DNA of 64,000 nt from positions 310,001 to 374,000 of the forward strand of contig NW_026864155.1 in assembly GCF_026571515.1 (NCBI RefSeq), written 5' to 3'. A program made the translations under genes and the position numbers. Position 1 is the stretch's first letter; each line of letters begins with the position of its first letter. Under the pieces are notes generated by a model that was not told the origin of the DNA, did no database searches, and worked only from the letters and a program-made list of their open reading frames with translations. This document shows positions 43,301 through 64,000 of the stretch, piece by piece. Origin of the DNA: Ruditapes philippinarum. Lineage: Eukaryota.

Positions 43301-46300
43301 ATCTTACCCAGGTTTTATTTTGTGCCTGAATAAATGTGCAGAGTGTCACCAGATGTGTTGCTCCCACAGTATGGCATGAAAGTCTTAATTTTATTGACTT
43401 AACTCAATCTTGGAAACTTGCATTGTAAATATAACAGTTATAAGAAAAAAGTTAATAAAATCACTATTTTTTTTATGATATCTTAAGAAGACAAGGTATG
43501 AAACAATTATTTTCTACCCTTGTCAACAAATGGTGAATAATTTTATTGAATATAAAAATTTTAATATTTTTTCCCAACAATTCTTTCCAGTATGATAACA
43601 TTATAGAAACGCAGTTTACATTCTATTTGCTTGTATATCAGTTATTGTACATAACATTGTAACTTGTATATAATAGGAACTGTATTTATAGCATGTTATT
43701 CCCTTGTGGCCTTTTTCGTACTGAATAATGAACAATCTTAAACAAACATAGTCTGCCAATTTGAATAAAATTTTGTTTGCTGTTTTATATAGATGGTTAT
43801 TTCAAAAGAAGGTTATGCTTAAAATAATCTTTATAGCTGATTTATATGATTTTGATACTATTCCCAGATAAAAAATAAATTATTAAAATATTTAGAAAAA
43901 GATATTATTTCAAGATACCATCTTAATTAAAAGTGTTTTTAATTAAAAGTGATATAGGACTGTTTATTTTGATAAAAAAAAATTCCATGAAACAAAAATA
44001 GCAAGAACTGTGTGACTTATTTTAAGCATCACATAAAGAAATTGTTACAGATAATTGCATTTTCAAGTTTTATTTTTATATAATGTATGAACTTATGAGT
44101 GTTTACTAAATAAACTAGTTTTGATACTTATGCTGAAAAGTATTTTAAACTCTTCCTTTTATAGTCACTGACGTATAAGTACTTTTAAGTTTGAAAACAT
44201 CACCTTAACTCATAGTGAAAGGGCCTTGTTACTTGATGTATTAGTGAACAGACTTAGGATCACTTGCACCTTACGACTGCAGGTTCAATCCTGCCAGAGA
44301 CCTTTGATTTCTCTTACTGTGAGGAAACTATCCCAATAATTAGCTAAAAAAACGTCAGTGGTTCTACACGGGGTCTGTACTCTCAGTGCCTGAAAAGGCA
44401 GATGGACCTTATTAAACTTAGAACAGGCACAGTGGAATTCCTTAAATAATCCAGGAACATCTGAGGTCTTTCTCCATCATCAAACAAGCTGGAAAGTTAC
44501 CATACAACCTTTATGGTGTTGATTTGACTTAAAAAACCAACAATCTAATATGTGTAGTAATGTGAGTGAAAAAGAAATAATTTTATATTCTTCCAGTGAC
44601 ACCAGGTAGAAAAGGCATGGTTAAAGTTGGTCTTGAAGACACCAAGGGAAGCAGATTTCAAAAAACAAAACAGTGAGTATATATTTAATACAGAGCCAAA
44701 AATGTGGTTTCTTTACATAACTTCTTATTTAGTGCTTTAGAAAGTGTTATGGAAAGTTATAGAAGGTATTATGAAATAAGTGTTGTTTCAAGCGATACAG
44801 TGAGTTTCCTAGATGTGTTACTGTTTTGTTTTTACCCATACACCACCTATAATGTGTATTGAACTTATGTCCCACTTTGAATTTGCAAAATCATTACTAT
44901 TTGTAGGGCACTTATTTTCATGGTTTTCATGAACATGACAATTCATGAGAGTCATTTAAAGACCCATTGAAATTTCATTTTGTCTGCTGTAAGATTATTT
45001 TGCGTCACATTTATTTTTTGCACAAATAGACAATCAATGAATATAATGCCCATGAAAATGCCCTTTTTGACAAAACCACAAAATTTTATGACCACGAAAT
45101 TAAATTAACTCTCAGAATATGGCTCCTGATGAAGAAATTTTTGATATTTTACTAAAATTATCTGTTACTGATCATTTTCTACAGAGACATGGAGAGGCTG
45201 TAAGTGTATTTATGTTACATCAATGACTTGTTGTCAACCTAACTGTCAGTACTTTGATAATTGTTTAACAATTGTATAGATTTTTTCTTTTTATGAAATG
45301 TTTTATTTGCTTTTTAAATTAGAATATCTTAAGAAACCTTAAGGTTATGTTTGTTACCACACAGACTCAGTTTTGAAATGTAGATGAATTTTTTTTTAAG
45401 AATTTTATTTTACTTAGAACACGTAGATAAAAAAATTCACTACTGATTGAAATCAGGAACATGAATGGCTTTAAACTGATAACTTAGACAAAATTAAGTT
45501 TTTATGACAGAATGAGGAAAAAAATGAAATTTCTTCTGTTTTCTTGTGTATTTCATTATTTAATATTTTTCTGTGGCCATCTCTATGGCTGCAATTTTGG
45601 AAATCATCAATTATTTGATATATTTTTACATCTTTATAAATTATAGTCATATTTGTAACTGATACTAATTTGATACTTTTTTTAAGATTTTTATGCAATA
45701 TTTACATTCTTAAGGTAAAAGCAAAGTACGAAAAAATTATATTTCTATAGTAATAATATTGTTAAATGAAAGAATTCTTCTTTAAAATATGGTACTTTTA
45801 CTTTAACAACAGTTACATAGAATTTCCAATGTAAGTGTGCGTTAGTCAGTTTTTTGTTTCTCGTCTAAAATCCTAATTCTGGGCCTGGTTACTGGTACAA
45901 TATTCTATTAATTCCTTCCAATTAACTTACCAATTAATATAGATACTGTACAGTGGGTAATATTTGCGGATGTTTCATTTTCGCTTTTCGGTTTTCAATC
46001 AACCTTGAATTCAAATCTTCCACGAATATTTGCCACTTACGCAACAGGCATATCCATATAAAAAAATGTAAAAAATAAAAAACTCTAGTAATGTCTATAT
46101 AAATCAACAGTGATTAGAAAAAAGACATAATGGACACTTGCAATGGTTTTCGCATGAGGTTATTGTGAGTGAATATTTGGTGAACAATGTTCATAATAAT
46201 CGGCTTTCGTTTTCAAACACTGATTGTTAACTTTCATATACAGACGTTCCGTAAAACAGTTCAACACGGAAAGTCGCAAGTTTTATGCCAGCGTTATCCA

Positions 46301-46592: not shown

Positions 46593-49500
46593 CCTGTGGT
46601 TAAGTTTTTGTATGTAAGCTGGTATCTCCATAACTACTGAAGGGAATGGATTGAAACTTCACACACTTGTTCTCTGTGATTATCTAAGATGATTGGCACA
46701 AGTCCCATAACTCTGAATTGTTTTATTTCATAATTATGCCCCTTTTTCGACTTAGAAAATCTTGGTTAAGTTTTTGTATGTAAGCTGGTATCTCCATAAC
46801 TACTGAAGGGAATGGATTGAAACTTCACACACTTGTTCTCTGTGATTATCTAAGATGATTGGCACAAGTCCCATAACTCTGATTTGCTTTTTTTCATAAT
46901 TATGCCCTTTTGACTTAGAAATTCTTGGTTAAGTTTTTGTATGTAAGCTGGTATCTCCATAACTACTGAAGGGAATGGATTGAAACTTCACACACTTGTT
47001 CTCTGTGATTATCTAAGATGATTGGCACAAGTCCCATAACTCTGGTTTGCTTTTTTTCATAATTATGCCCCTTTTTCGACTTAGAAATTCTTAGTTAAGT
47101 TTTGTGTATGTAAGCTGTTATCTCCATAACTACTGAAGGGAATTGATTGAAACTTCACACACTTGTTCTCTGTGTTTATCTAAGACAATTGGCACAAGTA
47201 CCAATAACTCTGATTTTCTTTTTTACATAATTATGCCCTTTTTCGACTTAGAAATTCTTGGTTAAGTTTTTGTCGTGTAAGCTGGTATCTCCATAACTAC
47301 TGAAGGGAATGGATTGAAACTTCACACACTTGTTCTCTGTGATTATCTAAGATAATTGGCACAAGTCCCATAACTCTGATTTGCTTTTTTACATAATTAT
47401 GCCCCTTTTTTGACTTAGAAATTCTTGGTTAAGTTTTTGCGTGTAAGCTGGTATCTCCATAACTACTGAAGGGAATGGATTGAAACTTCACACACTTGGT
47501 CTCTGTGATTATCTAAGGTGATTGGTACAAGTCCCATAACTCTGAATTGTTTTATTTCATAATTATGCCCCTTTTTCGACTTAGAAAATCTTGGATTAGT
47601 TTTTGTATGTAAGCTTGTATCTCCATAACTACTGAAGGGAATGTATTGAAACTTGAAGAGTTTGTACCTTTTCGGACAATTTTATGTATTCATAGGTAAG
47701 CATTATTATACTCAATGAAACACCCTTGTGACAAATTTTCGAATAGTCGAGCTTTACTGTCCTCCGACAGTTCTTGTTTTATATGTTGAATAATTTTTTT
47801 TTTAAATAATTTTTTTAGTCCATGTTATTGTATAAAATATGATATAAATATTTTTTGTACTTGTATTTTGGGAAGTGTTGTATGATAATGTTAAGAAACA
47901 AACTCCTACAAAAGACTAATTTTATGATGTACTATAGTGTCCAGAGTGCATTTGCAGATTGGCCAAATTTTATATGACTTGCAGAGGCTTTGTTTTGTTT
48001 TGGTTTTAATGGTTTGAAAATTTGCAGGCAAGCAATTATAGAGCCTTTTGTAAGTCTAGATGACTTTCACAGAATGGTCAAACTCTATACTACTTTTTAA
48101 TTTTGGTTTGAGCATTGTAATGATTCAAAATTAGAAATTATTTAGTGAGAGATTTAGTATCTTATGTTGAAAAGGTATCAAAAAGACACTGATAGTATGT
48201 AAGTATCACTGTATGAAGTTGACCCTGACTAAATTTGAAGTGTTTCCAAGAACCTAAATTACATGTTGGTTTTCTTGTGTATGTCGGCTATTATTGTTTG
48301 ATAAGATTTTTTCATATTTACCTCCCTTTGACAAGATTTTGTCATAAAACATTATTTACCTCCCTTTATTTTAATAGGATTTTGTCATAAACATAATTAC
48401 CTCCCTTTATAACTTTCAGTAGGTAGCAGAAAAGCAGTTTAAAGTGAAAGATTTTTTAACCTTCGTCTTGATTGAGATTTTTTATGCCTTTTTCCTCTGT
48501 AAACTCATTGAAGGTGCTATTAGTCAGTTGTTATAAATGAAAGGAGATCAAAAGTCACAAGGCTGTCATGCACTTTGTAGGATTTTTGTTTTTGCTTTTT
48601 TTATCCTTTCTATATATTTTTGTATGTGTCTTTTAAATTATGTTAACAGTAGTTGGCGTGCTGAAAATATTGGTGAATAGTTTACTTAAATTTACTAAGT
48701 AATTGACTGGACATATAATTATGTCGGTTTCAAAAAAAAATCAAGAAGTACTTAATTTCTGTTAGCCTAGAGTTCTTCAAAAACCCAGTGCCTATAACAC
48801 TCCATATGTAATATATAAACGTCATTTTTCATCCTAATTAATGCCATTGTTCATCCTGACTCTTTCCCATATTAAATGTTATTTTTGTAAGAAAAATATG
48901 TAAACTTAACATAAGTGTTTTACATAATTATATATTATAATATATATATTTAGCACAATAACAAAATCGAGATTGGATCTCAACGCTCCATTAAAGCGTA
49001 TAAAGTAAGTACGTGGTGATTTCACTGCTATATCTAGTTGTTGGCCAGTTGTCATTCACGTACCTCATAAAGGAGTATTGAAATATTGTAGCGTAAGAAA
49101 TTTAGAAAACTAAACTATTCGTTCATTCACTTTTTTTTTTGTGTGATTCATTAGGAGAACTGATTTATTGTAGCATAAGAAATTGTAGACAACAAAACTA
49201 TTCGTTCACTTTTCATTTTGTGTGATTCATTAGGAGAACTGAAGTATTGTAGTGTAATAAATATAGAAAAAGAAACTATTCATTCACCTTAGACTGCGTG
49301 TGAGATGCTTATTTTTCGGAAAAAAATATAGAGTAAAATCCTGGAGAAAATAAAGAGTAAAATCTTTTCATTTGAGGAGAATGTGACGTTAGTTAAAGGA
49401 AAGTCTGTTTCAGTCGTGTGTTAGTCTTTGTCTCAAAAAATATGCAGACAGCATCTTATGTGAGGATCTTTCTCCACCAGTAAAAGGATGAAAAGTTGTT

Positions 49501-52500
49501 CATATGTTCTTTATATGTTACCTAAAAACCCGTTAGACAATGATGATTAAATACATGTATGTGTATGGATAACAACTTTAATCATTTAAAACTTTTAGTT
49601 AATCATTGTCCTTGGTGAAGGTCATATTTTTTATTACCATGTACATGTTTATATATAATATATATTGTTTCATAATCTTTTTCTGCTAATGTTTGATACA
49701 AATGTATTTCATAAATGTTTAAGGTATTGTCAGCATATTTCAAGTTGGTAGGTTTTGTTTCATATTTACAGAGAAAAACAGATAACATTCGAACCAAAAA
49801 GGAATCTTGTAAAATTTAAGGAAAATTTCAGTGGAAACAATGAAAAAGGCCAAAGGTACTTTGATGGGGTTATGTGAAAATGACGTATTTATATAAAAGT
49901 TGTTTTATATACATAGCTTGAAAATTCAGATGTTCACAAATATATATACTTTGTTTTGTTCACATGCTTTATAAGCCTTTAGCCCATGCTGCAAGTGGCA
50001 TCTGCCCATGAATCCAGTGCTGACCAAAATCAGCCGACACCTACATGCCATTTGATCATGTTCTGCACTGTTCACTACATTGTATTCAGTCAGTACTTAT
50101 TTTGAAATTTTCCCAAAAATTGATATTATTAAGTTATTTTGTCGAGATTGAAATATATAGACATTCAAGTCTAATAATTTAAAGGGATTTAGCATGGTAA
50201 AAGTTTAACTATTAAGATTAATTTAAAGCAGGTTTTATGGCCCAGTACAAACAGTTGAATGCAGAGACTGGAGGAGTCATGTGACAACCATTTATACACA
50301 GCCATATTATCTGATGAAAGTCCTTATTAGGAATTTTGTAATACTGTATAATAGTTTTACTTTATTAGTTTTAATTTATTCAAATACTTTATGAATTTGT
50401 TGAAGCAAACTGTATAGAACATATACTGTGTCAGTGTGCATAGATAATTTAAAAACTCGTGATTGCCTAAGAAAATTGGCATAATATAAAACAAGACTAG
50501 TTTTAAAATAAATTACTGCAGTCATATTAATGTGATGGAAATTTTCGAAAGCACCTAAACATGTAGATATTTCACCTTCACAATATATGTTTGTGTAGAA
50601 TTGAATTTAAATGCTCGCTTACATGTATGTGTGTTCACAATTGGCTTTCTTGGACTACATTTACAGCCTATTATCAGAGTCTGAACAAATTGTATGATAT
50701 ATCATCATGTAATATGAATGTATGCCTTAACAATTATGTCAATTTTTTTTTATCAAGACAAAATAATGTTACCTTGATATAATTGATAATACATTATTTA
50801 GATATCATATATCATAATTTCTGTGGAGCAGTGACCTAGTGGTTAAGGGGTTTGCCTCTCAACCAACCAGGGATCATGGGTTCGAGCCCTACTCGGGGTG
50901 AAGACCATTTTGCTTCATATGACACCAGTACTGGTAGCAGACTCAAAAATGATCGATAGAAGTTGCAAGAACTTTTTTTCGTAATCTGAAGCTTAAATAA
51001 ATATGTTTAAACTAAACAAATTTCTATGAATTAAATCATTTTAATTTTCTTGTCATATTAATACATTATATGTCATAGGTTTGACATGATTCCACATCAG
51101 CTTTTTCTTTAACCTTTTCCACCCTAAACTTAACCTTTCCACCCTAAATTTATCAAGTGGACATGTCCTACTTTTATTTTGGGACAGACCATTTTTCTTG
51201 TGAGGGATTTTGATATCAGAATGCTAAAATTAAGTAGTATAGAGCCTGGTCAGATGGCTTTGAAGGTAAGACAAATTGGCAAATTCAAAGAAAAACTGCA
51301 CCATTAATATGTAGAGAAATGACAGTTTTGCATTGAATTCCCAAGTTTTGTTATAGAAAATTGGAGTTATTATGGCATAAAAGACCAAAAGATTTCACCT
51401 TGTTAAATGGAAAATGTTTTGTTTTTTTCTGACCAGAAAATACTGTTGTTTTTTACTTTTGTCATAGTTTTTAATTTTTGACCTTGTTTTTCATGTTTGA
51501 CCTAGATTTTCATTTTTGACCTTATTTTCTAACTTTTGTCCAAGTTTTTTTTTTTTAATATTGAACACAGTTTTTTAATTTCTGACCTTGTTTTTATCTT
51601 TAATTTAGTGGTCATGAATACTACAAGTACCTTTCGTAAGTAGTTATATTCAACACTGAACACAAAGCTGTTTGTACAGCACAGTTCTTCTGTTTCTTTG
51701 CATTACATTTAATTCACTGAAAACGGAGAGATTTAGTACCAGGGTTGCCATTTTGACCATTTCTCTAGTACACCAGTCAATTGTAGTGCCGGCCCCTAAA
51801 TCTCAGGTGGGGGGGTGGGGTGAAGGACTGCAGCTGCATTTCCAGGCCCCCCAAGGTGAAAACTTGCAGGACCTGGTCTTACCAAAGGTTAGGTAATCTA
51901 AAAGTCAAAGTTCCTACTACTTAAGAAGTATTCCTCAGTGGTTTGGAGGCTTAAGGTTTACAATTGACTGAACTGTATGTAACAGTATGTTGAACTGTAT
52001 GTAAGTTCATGTTTTTCATTATGATATTTCTTCATTTTCTGAAACTAGATGAAATTAATTTTCAAAGGTTCAGGCCATATTCAAAGCTGAAATATTACAA
52101 AATTATGGCTCCTGTATGTCAATTGGGTAACTGCTTTTATATAATACATGTGCAAAGTCTAATCTGTTAATTTATTACCTAAAATCTTCTGTTTTTTTTC
52201 CAAACTTCTTTTTTTTTTTAATGAAAATACTTTCACTATTCTACTACTCTGGTAAACAGGGTTGTTTTTTTCCACCTATTAATAACAGCTAAGAACTCTA
52301 GAAATTCAAAATAAGGTCATTAAACGAACAAATTTCTAGTTGTCTGGAACACTTGAAATCTAATAAAGTATAAGTGAAGCATTAATTTTAATAGTGCCCC
52401 TAGCCCGGAAGCAACAGATCGCAACTTTTATCATGAGGGTAAATAGAAGCACCTCATGATTAATCAAATTTTCTCATCATGAGTGTACACTGTGCATAAG

Positions 52501-55500
52501 TTATTTTTCAAATAGGTGTCACATTGGTTGCATAGCATGTTTTGCTATTGAATGCTTTTTCAAACTTCTAGAAAACTTTACAAAAATTTGGTTATGCAGG
52601 CAAACTATTTGTTTGACAATTAAACAACCAAAAAAATATGTATGATCAAATTTTAGCATTTATATTGATTTTAATCTTTAATTTTAGTTTTGATAATAAC
52701 AGACATTTGGTCTGATTAAATCAAATTGGTTACGAGACCTGAGCTCAGAATTTGCTTCATGCAATCTCAGATGGTCTTGTAACAGATGCAAAGCTTACTT
52801 ATTTATCCTATGCATTTGAAATTAGTTTTTTTTGCAGTAATTTACAAATTTTTCTAAAAAAAAATAATACTGGGAAGTAACATAGAATTTTTTTTTTTTA
52901 AATTGTGCATACATGTATATATATATATTTTTTATAATTATGTATTGTATAGTTGATGAACATGATTTCAGGGTGGACGACTATGGTCATGTAATCACCC
53001 ATCGTTACCTTGACAACAGGGGATGGAACTCTGGGTACTATATGACACTCTGGGACTTACGTTTTATATTATGTTTACAAACTTGGATTTCCTTGAAAAG
53101 TTTTAAAATTGTGCTTAATATTATAAAACAGCAGTTTCAAAATACACACAGAGATAGCTGTGACTTTGCTGATTGTATGTTTACGTTCTTTGAAATTCAG
53201 TGTAGATTGCCTTTTTGGAAATTTATTATGTTTTCTACGAAAAGGAGCAATTTTATTACATGTTTACAAGTAGATACTTGCATTCACATGTATATGTTGT
53301 TTTTATCAGACTTTTTGAAAGAGTTTTGAGTGGCTAGATAGATTGATTATGAGATTTATTTGTGAAAAAAAAATTTTTTTGACACTACATTATTCTTTTC
53401 AAGGAAGTCGAGGTTTGTTTTTTTTAATGACAGAATAATGAAGGTTTCACTTGTTGATAGAAAGAGAATTAAGTAGCTTTTTTGATAAAAATTTTAGAGT
53501 TTAAAATTGTTTCTTTTTGCATTGCCTCATTGTTTCGCCTATGAAATTCAGTGGAATTACCTTTTACATTTATTTATAAAATGCTCATATTAAAATTATT
53601 CTTTTACAATACCTTGTTTTGCCAATGAAATTCAGTGGAATTATCTTTTACTTTTGATGTATTATCTACTGAGATTGTTGTTCTTATAGAAAAAAAAAAA
53701 AAAAAAAATAAATTAACAATTAAAGTCTATAGGCTATTGATTTAAAGAACAATGAAAATACTAGCCCATTGTTTGTGTATTAAATTTTCTATAATCATCT
53801 TTAATTTTGTTGGTAACATTAAAAATTTTCAGATAAATATATTGTAGAATTATTATAATATATAAACAGGAAATATAGCATTGCCTAAAATAATAAGGAA
53901 AATGATAAACAAAATACTGACATAAAAAGTTAAAGTTCACTTTCAGGGCCGGCAAAATCTGATTTTGACTTACTTGTCGGTTTTTATGTGAAGCATTTTT
54001 TAACTTGTCCATATGATATTGACATACATTTGTAGTTAATTCTTGAATATTTTCACTTGTCCATACAGGCTGTGGGACAACCTGGGCAATACAAACAATT
54101 GATTTTGCCGCCCCTGACTTTTCTTTTCTAATTTTGCTTTTTAAATGCGGAAAACAAAAATTAAATTTACCGGTAATTCAAATATAATTATCCTGAATTA
54201 TCATTAAATGGGTGGTTCTACGGTATGTACATGTATGTACATGATATACACTTATTAACAATTGGAGCTTTATGTACGCCATTTAATAGCAAGTGAAACC
54301 TTCCCACTTTTCTAGGTGTTTTATGTTTTTTGTGTGCACTTTCATGTTTTCTGTGCTAGATATCATGAAGAATATTTTGCTGAAGTGTGGTGTTTGTTGG
54401 AGTGAAGATGGTGTTTGATTTAAAACATAATATGAGCCGCGTCACGACAAAACCAACATAATGCGTTTGCGAGCAGCATGGATCCAGACCAGCCTGCGAA
54501 TCCGCGCAGTCTGATCAGGATCCATGCTGTTCGCTATCAGTTTCTTTACTTGTTATAGGGTCTGTAAGCGAACAGCATGGATCCTGATCAGACTGCGCGG
54601 ATGCGCAGGCTGGTCTGGATCCATGCTTAGGTCGCAAAGCCATTATGTTGGTTTTGTCGTGACGCGGCTCAATTATTGTAATGTTGTGCTATAGAAACAA
54701 TATTTGAGATTATCACATGATACTGTTGGTTCTCAATGAATATTAAAATTATTTGTTCCTTTATATTTTAACAAATTTGACATAAATATGGCCCATCAAA
54801 GGTGTTTTAGTGGGGTTTTCATTTCCCCCATTTTCTGGCTGTATAAAATCATGTGATGAAATAGAATCTTACATTTGCTATAATTTCATTAAGACTTACA
54901 TGTATATTAAACTGTTCTCTGGAATATTTATACATGTATATACCTGGGCACAGGCTTACTTATAAATTTTTTTTATCCTAGAATTGTTTTAATTGTATCA
55001 GTTTAAGTTGATTAAGAAATGACAACATTTGTAAGATTCTATGTATATACATGTAGCTATGCTTTCTGTATGTCTACATGTACATATAACCCTGATAATT
55101 GGTATTATAATTGAAAATTCCTTAATTAATATTATGCTGTATGTTTGTATAATTATAATTAACTTTACTTTAAAGGCCCATTAATTAAGCCTCAAAAAAT
55201 GGTATCATTTGTATTTTTCAAAAAATTTTTTACGTGTGTCCTTTTAAAGTTTTCAAAGTGATATACATTGGCCATATACCTGAAAACATCTTTCCCTTTG
55301 GGTTCTGGCAATAAGTAAAGTTATAGTTAATTAGTATTTTGTATGGCAGCCCATTGCTTACATTTTGCTACATATATCACAAAATTAATGGCTATAAATC
55401 TTAAGTTGCACATTCTAAACCCATAATTATTTAAACATTATAAAACACAATCATGTTTGCCTTTTCTATGCAGAACAAAATCCTTTCATTTTTGTGACAT

Positions 55501-58500
55501 AATGTGCCTTTAAAATGTGCCTTTTTGTTTTGTTTTACAGATTGATGTTGATCATGATGTATTTTTTAAGGGCTTATATACTTACTGTGATATGAGTTTA
55601 TTATGGTACTTGGAGAAAAACAAACAATAATCTTTTTACTTGTATTTCAAAACTTTTACAAGTGTGTTCAGTACATGATTCTGAAAACAGTATTTAATTT
55701 TGTTGTTAAACAAGAACATCACATGTGGTTATAGCGCTTGTTTGTTAAAAATTCTAAGTTAAAAGAGGCATACCGGTAAGTCAAAAAATATCTTTCTGTT
55801 TTTTTACCTTCAGAAATTAGTTTTTTGGTCGAAAAATTGCGAAATTTTGCACCTTGTTCATGAAAAAGCAAAAAGGTTTGGGTTTTTTAATGTTGATAAC
55901 ATTGAAATGTTTCAATGATCGGCTACATTGAAGTGTTTTCATTATGATGACGACAATGAGTTACTGACGCTGCAGGAATTGTAATTGCTTGACTTTTTCT
56001 TCAAAACAGACTAACTAAAAATGAAAATGACATTTTGCTAATTTTTTGGCTGTCAACATCATTCTGTTGAGCTTTAAGTTAGCTATAAATTTCAAAAGCC
56101 TTTATAGCCGATCAATATCATGGTGATTGAACAGTAATTGTTCATGATAAATGTTTAAAAACATGTACAAATGATTGCAACACTCTGTATATCATTGAAT
56201 GTTACCGATAAATTTCAAAGAATTTCCATGAGTCACACAAGTTGCAAAGGCAAAATGTAAAGTTATTCTGACTTTAACCTGTACACTAACCATTTATAAT
56301 TAGAAAGGCACATAATGCCAATTCAATCATTTTTACATTTTTAACACTACAAGGAAATACTGTTTTCAGAATCATATTGATACTGAGTATTAAATTATTA
56401 TGATAGTATGATTGCTTTTGTTTTAAATATCTCAGTACAAATGAGGTATAATTTATAAAAAAAAAATGTGAGATAAAGCTAGAGTTATTTACATAATGTT
56501 TTAATTGGATGTCATTTTCAGATTGTTTTGTTAGCATTATAGTACAGAATATAATTTATTTTATTAATAAACTTGATGATGAGAAAAACAACACTGAATT
56601 TGATTGGCTGTTTCAGATTTTTGAAATTTTAATTTGACCAATAGCTAAGTAGCACAATGTAGACTGTTCTAATATTTCAGATATGTGTAAATTGAAACCA
56701 TAAGATGAAAATGCTGTGTAAAATTTTACTGTAATTATTGTTGTCTCTGTTCTTGTGTTTGTAATCGTATTGTTGTTGTTGTTATTGTTGCGCTAACTTA
56801 GAAAGTATTTTACAGATTACATGAGCAAAAGGCTCCGCCAAAACCTGCTATAAAGCAACAAACTATACAAAAGAAACGGCCAGGTCAGGTGGTCGAGTCC
56901 GATATGGTGCCGAGGTACGTCGTTGAAGAGAAGGAACAGGAAGTGCTATCACGTGACGAAACTATACAAGTAAGTCAGAGTGCCACCTATCCCGAATTAA
57001 TATTCTCTTAAATTTTTAACATTGCAGAGTGGAGCATATTCCACCTCGTCAGAGAAATAAAATACTGGAAGGCGATTTGGTCCCGCGTATTTTGTTAGAA
57101 GAGCGGGAACAAGAAGTCCTTGCTAAGGATGAAATGGTCAAGGTCAGTGGCTACAGTGTCCACACATTAGTAGCACGTTTTGTGTGTGGCAAAATTTACA
57201 ATTGTTGTGGAGTGTTTTAGCTCAGTGCTAGCTGCAATTGTTTTGTTAGTTTTGTAATTTGTATACAATTATATATTTTTACACTTATTCTGAAAATTGC
57301 CACATTAAAAGATATCATTTCAAAATTAAAGAAAAAATTGCCATGTAGAATGTCTTTTCTCTATCATTTTTTGCTTGAAGCCAAATGTTTTTGTAAAATT
57401 TTGTAATCTTTGGTTTAAACAATATTCATTTCTTTTTGCATATTTTCAAACAAAATTTCAATATATAAATTGCATCGAGGATTGAGTAGAAAGCTTAACG
57501 CTTATTTGATTTTAACTCTCTCCTGTTTTGTAATCTTTGATCATTATCAATAAAAAGAATGAAATTTAAAGGGGGCCCCATTTAATGTGGCAACTTTCAT
57601 GTTTCTCAGGTTTAGACTTGGGCAAGGATTTTTTATCATGCATATACAGTCAAACCTGTGCTAAAGACCACTTTCAGAGTTATTACCCTTACCTATAAAA
57701 TGGACTTCTCCTGCTTTGAATTTGGGACTGTCCATTATAAAAATGAGGGATTTTTATATCAAAATAATATCTAATTAAGGCAGTAGAGGGCCTCAGGTCA
57801 GATGGCAGAAAAAATTTTCCCTTTAGCAAATACAATATTTGCCATGGCAACTTCTGGTACACATCATATAGTTAACAATGAAGGCATTTGAATGTGTTTG
57901 TTCAACAGCGCATTAATATTTCATTTAAATTCGCTGTCCATGTCATTAAAATGTATTTTAAGGAAGAACCTTAGTTAAAGAAACTGTCCGGTTAGCTCAA
58001 TAGGTAGAGCTCTGATTATTTGGGTTTGATTCCTGGACAGTGCAGGTCACTTTCTTTGTGATTGATCATGAAATCCTTTCTACATGTTCTACGGTCATTT
58101 ACACTGTACCTCTGCTCTGGCATGTACAGAAATTATCAGTATCTTGCAAAAGTGAAGGCAACTAGTACTGGTGAACTGCTTGATAGCCTGTCCAGGATCG
58201 ATTCGGTGACTGAACTGTGCCCTGGTATTTAAATTCAATTTGGTTTACTCCTGTGATCCAGAGTGAAAACTTCAAAACTACCAACACCACACCATTTTTA
58301 TAAACGCAAAAATATTCACTTTTGTAGTGAGGAAGTTATAATATAGTTCCACATATAACCTGTATATATATCTTCTATAAGGTTTTCAATGTTGGCCTTT
58401 TCTGCAGGTTTCACTGGTTAGGTTTAGTTTAAACAATATTTTATTAATAATCCACACATTTACATAATAAATTACATAAAATAAAATTTACGGATTGAGT

Positions 58501-61500
58501 AGGAAGCTTGTAAAGCTTTTTTGAAAACTCTCTCTGGTTAGGTTTACTTACATTTTACTTGCTTTTTATACAGTTATTCTAGCAGATATAATACTGAACT
58601 AGATAAATGTTAAGTTAATTTTGTAATTCAGAAAGATTTATTATGCGTTTTGGCAAAGTGGATTTCTATTAATACACTTGGTTGCTTAAGGTTATCTATC
58701 TTAATTGAATTGCTTATTGAATATGGCTTGTAGAAATAAAATTCATTGATGGCATATCATTGATTAAAAGGTGTAGATTTTTGCACTGCATTATATTACT
58801 CAACACTTGCTTGTCAAAGGGTGGTTTTTTTTAAGTTTGAGGTGAAAATTTATGCACCATTTTTGAACGTACACCACAATTCTCATGTCTGAATATTAAA
58901 TTTACATGTATATATACAAATGTACATGTATATCAAAATTTGAGAAGTAAAATGATGAAAATATATCATCTTTAAAAAAAAAAAATGGCATTATTCAAGG
59001 GTGTATGATAATGAGGGGAAGGTTTTGGGCCCTTTGGGGATAAGAATGTGTGAGGGGGAAGGGGGCGGGGACGTGATGGTAGTAGCCAGAAGCCGGCGGA
59101 AAGGGTAATTCTTTATTTCTGTTTTCTGTATTTAAAGGTTTTCATTGGTTAATTTTATCATATTCTCAGTTATACTCTTCTTTTCTTACTGTCATAAAGT
59201 CATGTAGAAATTTTAGTCTTAAAGTTATTTCACATCTTAAGTTAGTAAATCACCTGATATTTATCTGCATGAAGCCTATGACTAATATTGATTTCTTCAC
59301 TTCTTAAAGTTGTTTCTATTAAAATTAAAACTAAGATTAAAATATTTGCCTTATTTTTATTAAAATTTGTTTTTTTAGATTTCCGTTTCAGTTCAATTTT
59401 TTTTGGCAGTCATCTCTTTAATAAGATTATACAGAAGTTGACTGTAGTTATAACACAGCTTTTAGCTTTTTGAAGGCTATTTAGATATTGAAGGCTACAT
59501 AGATTTTGAAGGCTATTTATATTTTTAGGGCAATTTAGATATTGAAGGCTTACATAGATTTTGAAGGCTAGGCAATTTAGATATTGAAGGCTACATAGAT
59601 TTTGAAGGCTATTTATATTTTTAGGGCAATTTAGATATTGAAGGCTTACATAGATTTTGAAGGCTAGGCAATTTAGATATTGAAGGCTACATAGATTTTG
59701 AAGGCTATTTATATTTTTAGGGCAATTTAGATATTGAAGGCTATTTATATTTTGAAGGCTTTTTAGATATTGAAGGCTACATAGATTTGGGCGACTGCTT
59801 AAACATTTTAATGCATACCTTTTATAATAGAAGAAGTCGTAATTTTACAGTAATTAAATTTTAATGTTTTTCATTTTTCAGTTTCATTTTAAGAGATGTC
59901 CAGATATGTAACATTTACAATTCATATGTAGCAATAAGCCTTTGATTATATGAATATATTTTGTAATAAACAAATAAAAATGTATAATTTATATTGGAAT
60001 TGTAAGGAAATTATTGTTATTTAAGAATTCTTTTAAAATATTCAAATGATTTTGGCAGAATTTTCAAGCCTAATAGGCTTAATGTCACCTGTATAGAGCG
60101 TCGGGTCTGCCTACACATTTTACAATCTGACAAAAACTGTTGGTTACTGAATTTTATTATTTGGATACTCGGACATCCCTTATTTTTTTCATGGACTGGT
60201 CCAAATTCTAAGCGGGCCAAGTCCATTATATAAATCCAGCAAGACAAGGGTTTAAATTTCATAACATCTACAAATTTTTAAGAAATTGATTGGTAAATCT
60301 TTTATACTTTTACGACAAGAACTAAAAAGTTATATATCACTTCAAAGGATGCTCTAGCTTAATGAAACAAACCAGTTTTGCACTACTCTAGAATAATTCA
60401 GATGTATTTTGGATTTACCCTTTGCAAAATATCGAGAATTTTGTTATTTAAGAAATTATATTTGACAGTATAACCTGCTAATAAAATGATATTTTAGATT
60501 GTAAGATAATTAATCTATGATGATCTCAGAAAGATATTAATTGCAATAAGTATGGAATGTTGTTTTTATGCTCCCAAATACTTAATTAGGTGAGGCGTAG
60601 ATTACCCTTGTCTGTTGTTCGGCTGTCTGTCCATCGAGTGACATAACAGTGGAATGACTGGAAGACAGTATATTTCTTGTTTTTAATGTAGACTTGCATG
60701 ATGTAAGCTAGTATAGTATAATAAAATTATTGAAAACATCATAATGTAAATAAATGTTTATTTTGTAAGTAAAAATCATATATTAATCATTCTTGCTCTT
60801 AATTATCTTTATTAAAAAAATCTTTCATTAATTGGCCAAAGAATACGAAAACCTATGGGCATTTTTCCAAGCTTTCTACATGTTAACATGAACTGCAGCA
60901 TGGAGCATTTATCTCACTTGCTGTGTATGAAAACAGACTGTCATTTTAGAAATATTTGTTTGTTTATATTTAGAAATTTATATTGTACACAATATCTTTG
61001 GTGGTGGAATGTATTTAGCAAAGTATCTTTAATGTTGTATTAAATCTATACTTAGATGAAAAGTTATAAACAATTTATTTAACTCAGGGTTAGTATTCAT
61101 CAGTACTTACAGTTTAAAGAAGGTTGATAATTTAGATGCAGACCAAAAGCTTAATAAATATAAATTTCAAAATCTTGTATAGATCAGCAGAGACACTTAA
61201 AACATAATGCAAATGTAATATGAAAAATATAATGATGAAATTATTATACTATTATTATACTTAAATTGAAAATTTCCCAATTAGCAACTAATGCTTTTAA
61301 TTAAGGTCATATAATTATGCAAAGTAAAAATGATTATTTCACAAAAAAGATTTTTTTAATGAATTTTGTCAAAATATTAACAAATTCATGTGTTCTACAA
61401 AGTGCAGACTACCAAATATATAATAAAACACTTTACTTTTTTTAAATCTAGTGTGAATGAAAATTACTGGCTTGGTCACAATTAAGTATAGAGCCTGCAT

Positions 61501-62766
61501 GGCTTATTTAGGCTAAACAATCTGTGCAGACTGCATGAAGCATTCACTCAATTCGGTTCATTTTACCTTGAACTCCTTATAATTAAAAATTGACTCTTCC
61601 AAATTCAATGTGGGACAAGTCCATTATATGAAATCAGCAGAGAAAGAAATACACTAGTCTTAAATTTCACTAAAATAGTGTAATGTGAACTAGTCCTAAT
61701 TCACTGAAATGGTGAATTATTATAACTGACCTAGTCCTAAATTAGCTTTTGGTGTATTGTCAACCAACCCTAAATTCACTTATGGTGTATCTTCAACCAG
61801 TCCTAAATTCACTCAAGGTGCATTGTCAACCAGTCCTAAATTCACTTATGGTGTATCGGCAACCAGTCCTAAATTCACTTTTGGTGTATAATGTCAACCA
61901 GTCCTAAATTCACTTATGGTGTATCTTCAACTAGTCCTAAATTCACTCAAGGTGTATTGTCAACCAGTCCTAAATTTACTTATGGTGTATCGTCAACCAG
62001 TCCTAAATTTACTTTTGGTGTATTGTCAAACAGTCCTAAATTCGCTTTTGGTGTATTGTCAACCAGTCCTAAATTCACTTTTGGTGTATTGTCAACCAGT
62101 CCTAAATTCACTTTTGGTGTATTGTTAACCAGTCCTATATTCACTTAAGGTGTATTGTCAACCGAGCCCTTATAATTCACTTAAGGTGTATCGTAAACCA
62201 GTCCTAAATTTACTTTGGTGTATTGTTAATTTGTTGATTTATGCAATTATAACCTTGATTATCTTATACTGCACGTGTGTAAAAAACTGTATCTTTTGGA
62301 ATTTAGAAAGTCAATTAATTCTATGCATATCATGCAAAGAAAAGAAGAAATTTTAAGAAAATATTAAGTACATGTACTTTAAAATTGATGAATACTAACC
62401 TTGGACTTTCTGATATTTATTATGATGCAATTTTCAAGTGAGTCATCGGCCAAATTTGAAGCTATTGAAATGTTAAATAAACTCGAATACTTCTCTATTT
62501 TACTGTATTTAGAAATGGCTTGGATTCTAGTACTGCTCATAAGTTTTCCTTTGGCTTATTTATGTTTTCTTTTGGTTAATTTCAAACTATTTATATAGTC
62601 CACTAATATTTCACTTTTTTTCACACCAACTAATTTTTTTTTATATTTGTAGATTTTACAAGCAAAAATTTCCCGCTTAGAACACTTACTACATTTAAAA
62701 GACATGAGAATTGATGATCTACAAACACGGGTTGAGTCAATGCGGCCAACGGGAATCAAGAAATGA
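34352..62766 (+). CDS. SPEF1: Sperm flagellar protein 1 (CLAMP; CH domain plus C-terminal coiled coil)
   Basis: Core exons 34352-34514, 38738-38849, 42877-43064, 44597-44672, 56816-56969 or 57028-57142, and 62653-62766. Translation includes LYAWVDSIPLSRPKRNISRDFSDGVLVAEIMHHFFPKMVEMHNYCPANS...NWDLLNRKVFSKMNF...EEKEQEVLSRDETIQILQAKISRLEHLLHLKDMRIDDL. Candidate cassette exons lie between 45185 and 53034. Confidence 0.93.
34583..35355 (-). mobile_element. HINE-like element in SPEF1 intron 1
   Basis: Subterminal inverted repeat AGCGAGCTCGA/TCGAGCTCGCT. Terminal hairpin AGGCAAAGCCT at the left end and GC hairpins at the right end. Confidence 0.55.
39470..39670. repeat. ~50-bp tandem repeat, about 4 copies
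   Basis: GTTAGTTAAAACAATATA..TGGCTT..ACCTTTTACTAATGA repeated. Confidence 0.8.
44220..44545 (+). mobile_element. Degenerate SINE (second family; fragment also at 62930-63040)
   Basis: B-box-like GGTTCAATCC. The core GTGGTTCTAC...GCCTGAAA...CACCTGAGGT..TCC..CA..AAGCTGGAAAGT is shared with 62930-63040. Confidence 0.6.
45185..45199 (+). CDS. SPEF1: SPEF1 candidate 15-nt microexon (phase 2-2; Q-DMER-L)
   Basis: cattttctacag|AGACATGGAGAGGCT|gtaagt. Confidence 0.65.
45813..45830 (+). CDS. SPEF1: SPEF1 candidate 18-nt microexon (phase 2-2; YIEFP)
   Basis: cttttactttaacaacag|TTACATAGAATTTCCAAT|gtaagt. Confidence 0.5.
45946..46461. mobile_element. MITE with TA TSD (pogo/Tc1-mariner-like)
   Basis: TA|CTGTACAGTGGGTAATATTTGCGG ... 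CCGCAAATTAGCCCGCTGTACAG|TA. Confidence 0.8.
46503..47779 (+). mobile_element. HINE/Helentron-like element with (GTCGGC)n and ~166-bp internal tandem array
   Basis: Subterminal inverted repeat AGCTCGACTATTCG/CGAATAGTCGAGCT, microsatellite at 46553-46591, about 6.3 near-identical units, and 3' hairpin ACTGTCCTCCGACAGT plus TCTTGTT. Confidence 0.85.
48954..49004 (+). CDS. SPEF1: SPEF1 candidate 51-nt cassette exon (TITKSRLDLNAPLKRI)
   Basis: atttag|CACAATAAC...CGTATAAA|gtaagt; open in the phase-2 frame. Confidence 0.6.
49772..49855 (+). CDS. SPEF1: SPEF1 candidate 84-nt cassette exon (EKQITFEPKRNLVKFKENFSGNNEKGQ)
   Basis: tttgtttcatatttacag|AGAAAAACAG...GGCCAAAG|gtactt; purine-rich and open in the phase-2 frame. 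Confidence 0.55.
50823..51017 (+). mobile_element. tRNA-derived SINE
   Basis: A-box-like GTGACCTAGTGG and B box GGTTCGAGCC. The tail resembles that of 30214-30427. Possible TSD AATTTCT. Confidence 0.75.
51609..51635 (+). CDS. SPEF1: SPEF1 candidate 27-nt microexon (GHEYYKYL)
   Basis: tttttatctttaatttag|TGGTCATGAATACTACAAGTACCTTTC|gtaagt. Confidence 0.6.
52972..53034 (+). CDS. SPEF1: SPEF1 possible 63-nt cassette exon (VDDYGHVITHRYLDNRGWNS)
   Basis: gatttcag|GGTGGAC...TCTGG|gtacta; a GC-richer island open in the phase-2 frame, but the splice sites are weaker. Confidence 0.4.
54433..54671. mobile_element. Palindromic MITE family A (best-preserved copy)
   Basis: TGAGCCGCGTCACGACAAAACCAACATAATG ... 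CATTATGTTGGTTTTGTCGTGACGCGGCTCA. Confidence 0.9.
55174..55509. mobile_element. Possible Kolobok-like MITE (TTAA TSD)
   Basis: TTAA|AGGCCCATTA ... TAATGTGCCT|TTAA; short TIR with 1 mismatch. Confidence 0.45.
56816..56969 (+). CDS. SPEF1: SPEF1 alternative penultimate exon A
   Basis: ttttacag|A-LHEQKAPPKPAIKQQTIQKKRPGQVVESDMVPRYVVEEKEQEVLSRDETIQ|gtaagt; phase 2 to 0. Confidence 0.85.
57028..57142 (+). CDS. SPEF1: SPEF1 alternative penultimate exon B (paralogous to A)
   Basis: cattgcag|A-VEHIPPRQRNKILEGDLVPRILLEEREQEVLAKDEMVK|gtcagt; phase 2 to 0. Confidence 0.8.
57985..58280 (+). mobile_element. Degenerate tRNA-derived SINE (third family)
   Basis: A box TAGCTCAATAGG, degenerate B box GGTTTGATTCC and an ACC/AAC-rich tail. 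Confidence 0.6.
59470..59788. repeat. ~19-bp minisatellite with ~96-bp higher-order period
   Basis: TTGAAGGCTA...TAGAT units; the block starting at 59541 recurs at 59637. Confidence 0.9.
61650..62225. repeat. 30-bp minisatellite (GGTGTATTGTCAACCAGTCCTAAATTCACT-like) in the last SPEF1 intron
   Basis: About 18 tandem units; these explain ORFs 61891-62356. Confidence 0.95.
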
Positions 62767-64000
62767 TTTTAAATTTTGCTCAGGTTTATTCCATTATATC
62801 ATAAAAGGTGGGCATGCATCATGTACTAAGGTAGAAGGGGTTTTAATGAATACTAATATGACTTCCTTTGGAGTAAATATGATAATTGTTAAGCTCATGT
62901 TGATTGCTATCTAGATAGTTAAAGAACGTCGGTCGGTGGTTCTACTCGGGTGCCAGATTGTGCCTGAAATAATGCACTGAAGGGCACCTGAGGTTTTCCT
63001 TCACCAGTAAAGCTGGAAAGTCACCATATGACGTACAATTATTGAAAGAGCTCATGTTAGTTAGTCAGTTTGTTAAAGATATACTATGCTCAAATTTGAT
63101 TTTAAAAATTTTAAAAATTGCATACACAGTTCTTTGTAGTAAAAATAAAATTTTACTTATTTTGTATGTTATTTTTAACTTTTAAACCCCCTAAAAAGGG
63201 GTCACTTAAAAAAACTCAAACACATGTATCAGAAAAATTCTTTTGTAAAATCTACACTAACAACCTGAAAAAAGGGACAAAATATATTATACATGCTGTC
63301 ATTTTCTAAATGTATATAATTTGGTATTATTATTATAATTTTTTTTTTTTGCACATATATTTAAACTAATATTGTCACATTATTTTGTCTGTTAACAAGC
63401 ATATTTATCACAAAAAAAAACACACCCATTTTAAAAGTTATTAATACCTTTTGAAAATACAATGCAGGCCGATTGGCTCGAGTCTGTACCGTCTGCCACT
63501 TGATTTCAGTATATTGGAATTAAAACCCCTTTAATTAACAATGGAAAGTTCCTAATTCCAAGCAGGGCAAGTCCATTAAAATTTACTGGGGGTGTCCGGG
63601 ATTTTTTACTGACTGAATTATTTAAACATCAAGTGGCTCAAAAAGGAAGTAAATTTTGATACATCTGTTTAGAATCTCTGTGACTGACCCTAAAAGAAAG
63701 TGAATTCTAATTCATCTTTTTAGAATCTTTATTCTTTTAACACCTTACTATTTCCTCTGACTGTCTTAGCTAGTTAATTCTGGTCTTTTAACTGTTCAGC
63801 TGAGGCTACTTTATTTACTAACAGAAATGTTAAAGATAGATATTTGTCTTCATGCAGCATTTTTATTATTATTTCAACTCGTCAATGTGAAATGCTTTAT
63901 TAAGGATGTCAGTTTCATTAAAATGGTATCCTTAGTCCTAGCTGACGTTCCACTACTCTTTGTAGCAAAGAGTGATGGAGCGAAAACGATGATTTGATTT

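Follow-up and report, generated by a model that had tools for sequence, protein, structure and literature searches.

A tandemly duplicated, probably mutually exclusive exon pair encodes the start of the SPEF1 coiled coil in the clam Ruditapes philippinarum

SPEF1 steadies the central-pair microtubules of motile cilia, and its binding to microtubules, at the central pair or the seam in motile cilia, is known for the vertebrate and Tetrahymena proteins. In the 64,000 nucleotides of genomic DNA analysed here, referred to as the window, a SPEF1 gene carries two small neighbouring exons that encode similar peptides. This raises the question of whether the two exons are alternative versions of one protein segment, what would keep them apart in the mature mRNA, and what a choice between them would change in the protein. 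The answer reached below is that exons A and B are very probably a tandemly duplicated, mutually exclusive pair, which predates the split of Venerida and Myida and of which both copies are under purifying selection.

The DNA comes from Ruditapes philippinarum. The gene is a genuine SPEF1, with a CH_2 domain and a coiled coil matching PDB entry 9IJX. The exons in the window are 100% identical to RefSeq protein P0001, annotated as 'sperm flagellar protein 1-like isoform X22 [Ruditapes philippinarum]'. Translations of the upstream exons match the Pfam family CH_2 (PF06294), the N-terminal CH-like domain, with E-values of 1.8e-6 and 3.2e-5. Exons were searched singly, and comparisons at full length relied on proteins from the databases. 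Isoforms P0074 and P0076 match the SPEF1 CH domain in PDB 2EE7 ('Sperm flagellar protein 1') with E-values of 4.9e-41 and 7.5e-37, respectively. The same isoforms, which join exon A (P0074) or exon B (P0076) to the last exon T1, match the SPEF1 coiled coil in 9IJX with E-values of 7.5e-12 and 3.7e-12. These matches at about 1e-12 bear out the preliminary description of the locus, which had placed the exon pair at the start of the SPEF1 coiled coil. When searched alone against PDB, exon B gave 9IJX as its top, albeit weak, match (E 0.58) and exon A gave no SPEF1 match; neither exon alone matched a family in a Pfam search.

Exon A comprises 154 nt (56816-56969) and exon B 115 nt (57028-57142), both on the forward strand, as are all exons of the window mentioned below. 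They are separated by an intron of 58 nt (56970-57027). Both are bounded by AG/GT splice sites: exon A lies between ttttacag and gtaagt, beginning with ATTACATG and ending with CTATACAA, and exon B lies between cattgcag and gtcagt, beginning with AGTGGAGC and ending with TGGTCAAG. The product of exon A is a segment of 51 amino acids, consisting of a basic, proline-rich linker up to KKRPGQ and then VESDMVPRYVVEEKEQEVLSRDETIQ, while exon B yields the 38-residue segment VEHIPPRQRNKILEGDLVPRILLEEREQEVLAKDEMVK. The translations are exactly those quoted previously, when the two peptides were called paralogous. In a pairwise BLASTP comparison, 14 of 29 residues are identical and 25 of 29 positive (E 3e-11), with the paralogous part formed by the last 29 codons; the linker part has diverged, and the exons differ in length by 39 nt. 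In a six-frame translation of the whole window (127,822 segments of 29 residues), exon B is the only segment that matches the exon A core at ten or more of the 29 positions. On the DNA level, the two copies are 55% identical over the 87 shared bases, with 15, 6, and 18 differences at the first, second, and third codon positions, a saturated pS of 0.86, and a pN of 0.34. The earlier suggestion that the protein pattern was kept despite strong DNA divergence, and that both copies are under selection, is in line with these values and with the orthologues retained by at least four further clam species.

The two exons also share their phases. In each, the first base completes a codon and the last base ends on phase 0, and both lengths are 1 mod 3. 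The last two bases of the constitutive exon E4 (44597-44672), CA, belong to an incomplete codon and set the phase that the first base of A or B completes; E4 is joined to A in RefSeq isoform P0062 and to B in P0071. The nearest upstream exon is the cassette exon m7 (52972-53034, 63 nt, encoding VDDYGHVITHRYLDNRGWNSG), which likewise joins A (P0065) or B (P0064). A high-copy palindromic element is located between m7 and exon A, at 54433-54671. Downstream, the last exon T1 (62653-62769) begins in phase 0 and provides the coiled coil with its canonical basic C-terminal half, ILQAKISRLEHLLHLKDMRIDDLQTRVESMRPTGIKK, before the stop codon. T1 is paired with A or with B in ten RefSeq isoforms. Either exon thus fits the upstream exons, as had been proposed, and only the statement that the exon at 62653 is the last one needs correction: T1 is one of two alternative last exons, and its paralogue T2 is located at the window-equivalent positions 64474-64776, 474 nt past the end of the window. 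Double inclusion does shift the frame in the way that was described. When A and B are read together, translation runs through SGAYSTSSEK into a TAA at 57058-57060, 82 nt upstream of the exon B donor. When both are skipped, a stop is reached after nine codons in T1.

Exactly one of the two exons is present in all 46 RefSeq isoforms of the gene (A in 20, B in 26), never both and never neither, although these isoforms are automatic models, and out-of-frame transcripts with double inclusion would not appear among them as proteins. All four combinations of A or B with T1 or T2 are represented. Transcript data add to this picture. In Logan RNA contigs from three studies, exons A and B are found apart from each other, in pieces whose ends coincide with the exon ends; in runs X5 and X12, the boundaries of both exons are exact, and at an exon end the pieces continue for 8-30 letters that do not align. 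Run X12 contains both exons with allele differences. The contig depths of A and B are similar in the three studies (23.7/32.7, 11.5/9.07, and 83.1/72.4), while the depth bins of the flanking introns are mostly 0-5. A GT..AG joint from 53034 to 57028, which bypasses exon A, is found in RNA contigs of X1 and X12, and two Logan transcript ORFs from one clam species are identical apart from the A/B swap. The joint from 56969 to 57028, which would connect A to B, was absent among the joints listed for four runs, a weak piece of evidence, as the joints listed are dominated by the element at 54433-54671. Together, the RefSeq models, the presence of both exons in RNA contigs of three studies, and the bypassing joint agree with the mutually exclusive use that had been suggested. 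Exclusivity is read here from RefSeq models and RNA contigs, with which rare double inclusion would be compatible. The similar depth of A and B in the same three samples does not favour a strict separation by tissue, such as the one tentatively suggested between sperm flagella and gill or larval cilia.

The choice between A and B is embedded in a larger set of alternatives. Exon 2, which encodes part of the CH domain, is present in three copies about 2 kb apart, which are also 1 mod 3. Three clusters of duplicated exons (exon 2 in triplicate, A/B, and T1/T2) and seven cassette micro-exons thus occur in one small gene. The preliminary description had spoken of two SPEF1 isoforms with different coiled-coil starts. 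The different starts stand; the number does not, since the alternatives of this gene combine to give at least 46 models.

In the proposed mechanism, a mature mRNA would take exactly one exon, A or B. Either exon completes the codon that the upstream exon leaves unfinished and passes a phase-0 boundary on to T1 or T2. The exclusion itself is suggested to be chiefly steric. Because the intron between A and B is only 58 nt long, any branch point serving exon B lies at most 50 nt from the exon A donor, and a usable one would be too close to it for splicing. Only two sites resembling the yUnAy branch-point consensus are present in this intron: A57000, at 31 nt from the exon A donor, and A57019, at 50 nt from the donor and 8 nt from the AG. 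According to PMC7969005, the steric threshold between a 5' splice site and a branch point is approximately 50 nt. The same paper attributes the exclusion of exons 2 and 3 of alpha-tropomyosin, and of exons 4a and 4b of OGDH, to a branch point located too near to the upstream 5' splice site. The clam pair resembles these cases in its very short spacing between donor and putative branch points, at most 50 nt, and differs from them in that the frame rule additionally forbids double inclusion. Transcripts that include or skip both exons would additionally be filtered out by the frameshift, which leads to a stop codon.

It is possible, though the less favoured reading, that surveillance does all of this work. 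The 58-nt intron would then be spliceable, transcripts with both exons or with neither would be made and then be removed or useless, and trans-acting regulators would choose the exon. Many invertebrates splice introns of about this length. The exon lengths of 1 mod 3 fit such a scheme, as do the stop codon 82 nt before the next junction upon double inclusion and the early stop upon double skipping. Moreover, the exon 2 copies, about 2 kb apart and likewise 1 mod 3, indicate that this gene may need nothing beyond the frame rule. On the other side of the balance are the A-to-B joint, absent among the joints listed for the four runs (weak evidence, as noted above), and the positions of the only two branch-point-like motifs, of which one is 31 nt away from the donor and the other just 8 nt away from the acceptor.

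Competing RNA structures, formed by docking and selector sites, are known to govern tandem mutually exclusive exons such as those of insect Dscam and 14-3-3zeta (PMC6071210). Such a mechanism is improbable here: the RNA fold of 56940-57060 is no better than that of shuffled sequences (z -0.11). The region 56300-57700 contains short, AT-rich inverted repeats with 71-95% complementarity, none of which convincingly brackets the exons.

The age of the pair can be estimated from other bivalves. RefSeq isoforms from Mercenaria, Mya, and Dreissena include pairs of A and B exons, exon A orthologues were found in these three genera and in Mactra, and at least four clam species besides R. philippinarum retain orthologues of both exons. 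A region-restricted protein search with exon A returned four species only, none beyond those already found. Orthologous exons share 22.4 of 29 residues (A with A) and 22.1 of 29 (B with B), compared with 14.9 of 29 between A and B, and both exons are approximately 76% identical between orders. In the phylogenetic tree, the A-type exons form a clade (support 94/96), and so do the B-type exons (84/90). Exon B, whose absence or decay in relatives had been named as an outcome that would speak against the pair, is present alongside exon A in these clams. The annotated proteins of Unionida, Mytilus, oysters, and Solemya contain one B-like exon each. Since a single B-like exon is seen in these other bivalves, B looks like the ancestral copy and A like the derived one. 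On the basis of these comparisons, the duplication is placed before the split of Venerida and Myida, in the clade Neoheterodontei, with purifying selection apparently acting on both copies since then.

The consequences for the protein can be considered in the light of the mouse structure. A 2025 preprint proposed that dimerisation and phase separation of Spef1 are driven by its coiled coil, by means of an N-terminal half that is acidic and a C-terminal half that is basic; in the mouse protein, the acidic half contains E186, E188, E190, and E196, and its core includes I184, L191, and V198 (bioRxiv 10.1101/2025.07.31.667833). In the alignment with 9IJX, exon B starts to align at chain residue 2 and exon A at residue 16. 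The two exons encode the linker and the first 2.5 heptads of a parallel dimeric coiled coil, corresponding to its acidic N-terminal half. Both retain equivalents of the four glutamates and of the hydrophobic core at positions 184, 191, and 198. Because both copies keep these residues, coiled coils of the A type and of the B type should dimerise. The main difference resides in the linker preceding the helix, which in A is 13 amino acids longer, basic, and proline-rich with a conserved PK[KR]RPGP motif, and which in B reads VEH.PPR.R.K. A few surface and core positions differ as well. The functional difference between A and B would thus probably concern partner binding or regulation at the start of the helix, and not dimerisation itself. 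Clam A or B with T1 resembles the mouse coiled coil in aligning with it (E about 1e-12) and in keeping the acidic and core equivalents. In the clam protein, the acidic half (A/B) and the basic half (T1/T2) appear to be swapped independently. No report of alternative copies of the coiled-coil exon in vertebrate SPEF1 was found.

It is very improbable that one of the exons is an annotation artefact or a functionless duplicate that is decaying or spliced as noise: the RefSeq X-isoforms are automatic predictions and the single raw-read RNA run (X24) barely covered the gene, but both exons reach similar depth in RNA contigs of three studies, each type forms a clade with about 76% identity between orders while synonymous sites between A and B are saturated, and both retain the four acidic residues and the core of the mouse coiled coil.

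Tandem duplicated exon substitutions and mutually exclusive exons have been catalogued in humans (PMC9741552, PMC8373072) and reviewed (PMC9013439). The clam pair shares their features: the exons are adjacent, homologous, and of the same phase; a given mRNA contains only one of them; both products of an ancient duplication have been conserved; and the isoforms are identical outside the homologous segment. It departs from the human catalogues in that SPEF1 and neoheterodont bivalves are absent there, and in that the clam copies differ by 39 nt. In molluscs, duplicated alternative exons have been described for the alternative oxidase of oysters (PMC5589949) and, in molluscs, annelids, and helminths, for COQ-2 (PMC7434440). 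These genes are likewise spiralian, and in them, too, swapping a duplicated exon alters a functional segment. They encode other proteins, and the A/B pair of clam SPEF1 is one of three duplicated-exon clusters. No paper on the SPEF1 A/B pair was found in the literature, and its isoforms are present as automatic RefSeq models. The view that the pair had not been described for SPEF1 thus applies to publications, and not to automatic annotation, which already contains it.

The pair is a clean and conserved case of mutually exclusive splicing with a very short intron outside vertebrates and insects, and it illustrates that automatic annotation can already contain such events without their having been described. 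With two versions of the acidic half and its linker and two of the basic half, clams provide natural variants for probing which traits of the coiled coil and its linker are important. A more far-reaching and tentative proposal is that SPEF1 of Neoheterodontei is modular, with A/B setting the acidic half, T1/T2 the basic half, and the three exon 2 copies part of the microtubule-binding CH domain. The seemingly independent swaps might then yield combinatorial dimers that differ in self-association (phase separation) and partner binding across ciliary and flagellar cell types. If this modular reading is true, the clam isoforms would offer naturally occurring mutants with which to examine the electrostatic head-to-tail model proposed for mouse Spef1.

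The exons upstream of the duplicated pair A and B match Pfam CH_2, and the exons of the window show 100% identity to the database protein P0001, 'sperm flagellar protein 1-like isoform X22 [Ruditapes philippinarum]'. Protein searches were run with single exons, while full-length comparisons used database proteins rather than self-joined spliced models. Full isoforms match both the SPEF1 CH domain (PDB 2EE7; E 5e-41 and 8e-37) and the mouse Spef1 coiled coil (PDB 9IJX; E 7.5e-12 and 3.7e-12). The upstream part comprises E1 (34352-34514), three tandem copies of exon 2 (36196-36307, 38738-38849, and 40541-40658; 112, 112, and 118 nt), E3 (42877-43064), and E4 (44597-44672), which contributes two codon bases at its 3' end. 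Between 45185 and 53034 lie seven in-frame cassette micro-exons of 15-84 nt (45185-45199, 45813-45830, 48175-48198, 48954-49004, 49772-49855, 51609-51635, and 52972-53034). All seven match RefSeq isoform sequences and together form a variable linker. The exon at 62653, taken as the last one in the preliminary description, is indeed used as such (T1, 62653-62769), but not solely, as its paralogue T2 is an alternative located 474 nt past the window end (window-equivalent 64474-64776; L016:474-776 in the adjoining 3' DNA). T1 encodes the canonical C-terminus ...RPTGIKK; T2 retains the first 23 coiled-coil residues, followed by a His-, Gln-, and Ala-rich tail of ~75 aa. Either can join A or B. Isoforms of Mercenaria and Mya have the same T1/T2 pairing, and Mactra has a T2-like end.

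Exon A spans 56816-56969 (154 nt) and exon B 57028-57142 (115 nt), each on the + strand and between AG and GT. As described previously, they share entry and exit phase, with the first base closing a codon and the end falling on a codon boundary, and the peptides quoted for them are exact translations. They are separated by an intron of 58 nt, and their paralogy is borne out by 14 identities and 25 similarities in the final 29 residues (E 3e-11). In a six-frame translation of the 64-kb window, no other 29-residue window with at least 10 identities to exon A was found besides exon B. Over the 87 bases they have in common, DNA identity is 55%, with saturated synonymous differences (pS 0.86) and a pN of 0.34, in agreement with the proposal that the protein pattern was held despite DNA divergence. 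Judged from their sequences, A and B are ancient duplicates with a maintained protein pattern.

The proposed mutually exclusive use is evident in the RefSeq isoforms, 46 in number (18 cluster representatives and their members). A is present in 20/46 and B in 26/46; none of the 46 contains both exons or neither. All four combinations of A or B with T1 or T2 are represented. The alternative coiled-coil starts predicted earlier are present, in at least 46 isoform models rather than two isoforms. As an annotation-independent check, 51570-57300 was compared with Logan contigs from runs X1, X5, and X12, each belonging to a different study. The runs represent RNA, as the intron bins flanking A and B mostly have depths of 0-5. 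A and B appear as separate contig pieces, whose ends in X5 and X12 coincide exactly with the predicted splice sites; some continue into 8-30 unaligned letters. This is how the two arms of an alternative-exon bubble would be expected to look. Depths of A and B are about equal within each run (23.7/32.7 in X1, 11.5/9.07 in X5, and 83.1/72.4 in X12). A GT..AG joint in X1 and X12 (53034->57028) leads from the upstream cassette exon straight to B, skipping A. No A-to-B joint is among the joints listed, in tables dominated by a high-copy element at 54433-54671; the listing leaves out 552 joints, and A and B may on rare occasions be included together. In one raw-read RNA run, the SPEF1 gene was barely covered. 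Furthermore, two Logan transcript ORFs of one species, P0087 and P0094, differ only in that one has an A-type and the other a B-type segment.

A frame rule against double inclusion and double skipping can be read from the sequence, both exons being 1 mod 3 in length. Joining A to B leads to the previously indicated TAA at 57058-57060, 82 nt upstream of the B donor, while skipping both leads to a stop after nine codons in T1. The 58-nt intron would sterically exclude A-to-B splicing, with the frame rule as backup. Only two yUnAy motifs occur in this intron, with the adenine 31 nt or 50 nt from the A donor, the latter only 8 nt from the acceptor. For steric exclusion, PMC7969005 gives a threshold of ~50 nt between the 5' splice site and the branch point. 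Steric exclusion plus the frame rule is, by a modest preference, the probable means of enforcement. That the frame rule, surveillance, and regulators alone would suffice appears rather unlikely. A choice between A and B by competing RNA structures is highly improbable, given a folding z of -0.11 and an inverted-repeat search that gave no support.

The exon 2 copies encode the middle of the CH domain, and all three are 1 mod 3 in length with AG/GT sites. RefSeq isoforms use the third copy in 43/46 cases, the second in 2/46, and the first in 1/46. This triplet looks like a further mutually exclusive cluster of SPEF1, located in the microtubule-binding domain. A second SPEF1-like gene (G000:C10554:60726-77077, - strand), on a contig other than that of the window (G000:C12642:310001-374000), has one exon 2, one coiled-coil exon (..SDNIPRVLYEEKEMECQAKEETIQ), and one last exon, and is a paralogue devoid of exon duplications. 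The gene model of P0097, a non-RefSeq 'SPEF1-like protein' of Mya arenaria, combines the A-type exon, the B-type exon, and the two last exons. This is most likely an artefact of ab initio prediction that overlooked mutually exclusive exons. The intronic element at 54433-54671 is palindromic and MITE-like (~240 nt, arms 95% complementary), shows numerous internal rearrangement joints, and reaches an enormous depth in RNA runs, ~29,000x per strand in raw reads, on both strands. It belongs to a very abundant transcribed repeat family. The intron between B and T1 contains two tandem-repeat arrays, 59468-59788 (periods of 96/18 nt) and 61733-62226 (33 nt, ~15 copies).

Both copies are kept in relatives, as A-or-B alternatives are also present in RefSeq isoforms of Mercenaria mercenaria, Mya arenaria, and Dreissena polymorpha, and an A-type exon in Mactra. 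According to NCBI taxonomy, Ruditapes, Mya, and Dreissena are Neoheterodontei of the orders Venerida and Myida. Mean identities over the 29-residue core are 22.4 (A-A) and 22.1 (B-B) for orthologues versus 14.9 for A-B. A maximum-likelihood tree separates the A exons (94/96) from the B exons (84/90) as distinct clades inside a bivalve group; deeper forks lack resolution because the alignment is short. The duplication is older than the Venerida/Myida split. In protein-level comparison, a single exon is found in Unionida, Mytilus, oysters, Solemya, gastropods, and Lingula. That of the other bivalves is B-like (VPRIL, LAKDE, final K/R; VEH.P also in Unionida), and the stretch alignable to the mouse structure is longer in B, starting at chain residue 2 rather than at residue 16 as in A. 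B is accordingly the ancestral-like and A the derived copy.

Mutually exclusive exons from tandem duplication are a well-known event type (PMC9741552, PMC9013439), with mollusc cases of duplicated alternative exons (PMC5589949, PMC7434440). Full-text searches on SPEF1 together with mutual exclusivity, on SPEF1 together with Ruditapes, and on mutually exclusive or tandem duplicated exons in molluscs yielded no account of the A/B event, and SPEF1 is absent from the Manila clam splicing paper. The isoforms already exist as automatic RefSeq models.

The Spef1 coiled coil dimerises in parallel over seven heptads; its core comprises I184, L191, V198, and L201 onward, its N-terminal half is acidic through E186, E188, E190, and E196, and its basic C-terminal half involves K204, R207, K215, and R218 (bioRxiv 10.1101/2025.07.31.667833). 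The preprint's authors propose that head-to-tail electrostatic contacts aid phase separation; droplets were lost in coiled-coil-breaking mutants and weakened in charge mutants (bioRxiv 10.1101/2025.07.31.667833). The alignment to 9IJX puts I184-V198 at the ends of A and B; T1 corresponds to the basic half. None of the four acidic positions is lost in A (VVEEKEQEVLSRDETIQ) or B (LLEEREQEVLAKDEMVK), and residues 184, 191, and 198 are hydrophobic in each; for this reason both types are predicted to dimerise, with no apparent obstacle to A/B heterodimers in the e/g positions. A and B differ at positions 182-184 (Y-V-V vs I-L-L), 193/194 (S-R vs A-K), and 197-199 (T-I-Q vs M-V-K). The chief difference is the linker, which is longer, basic, and proline-rich in A, with a PK[KR]RPGP motif conserved across A orthologues, and carries VEH.PPR.R.K in B. 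The A/B switch would tune binding or regulation at the helix start rather than dimerisation itself.
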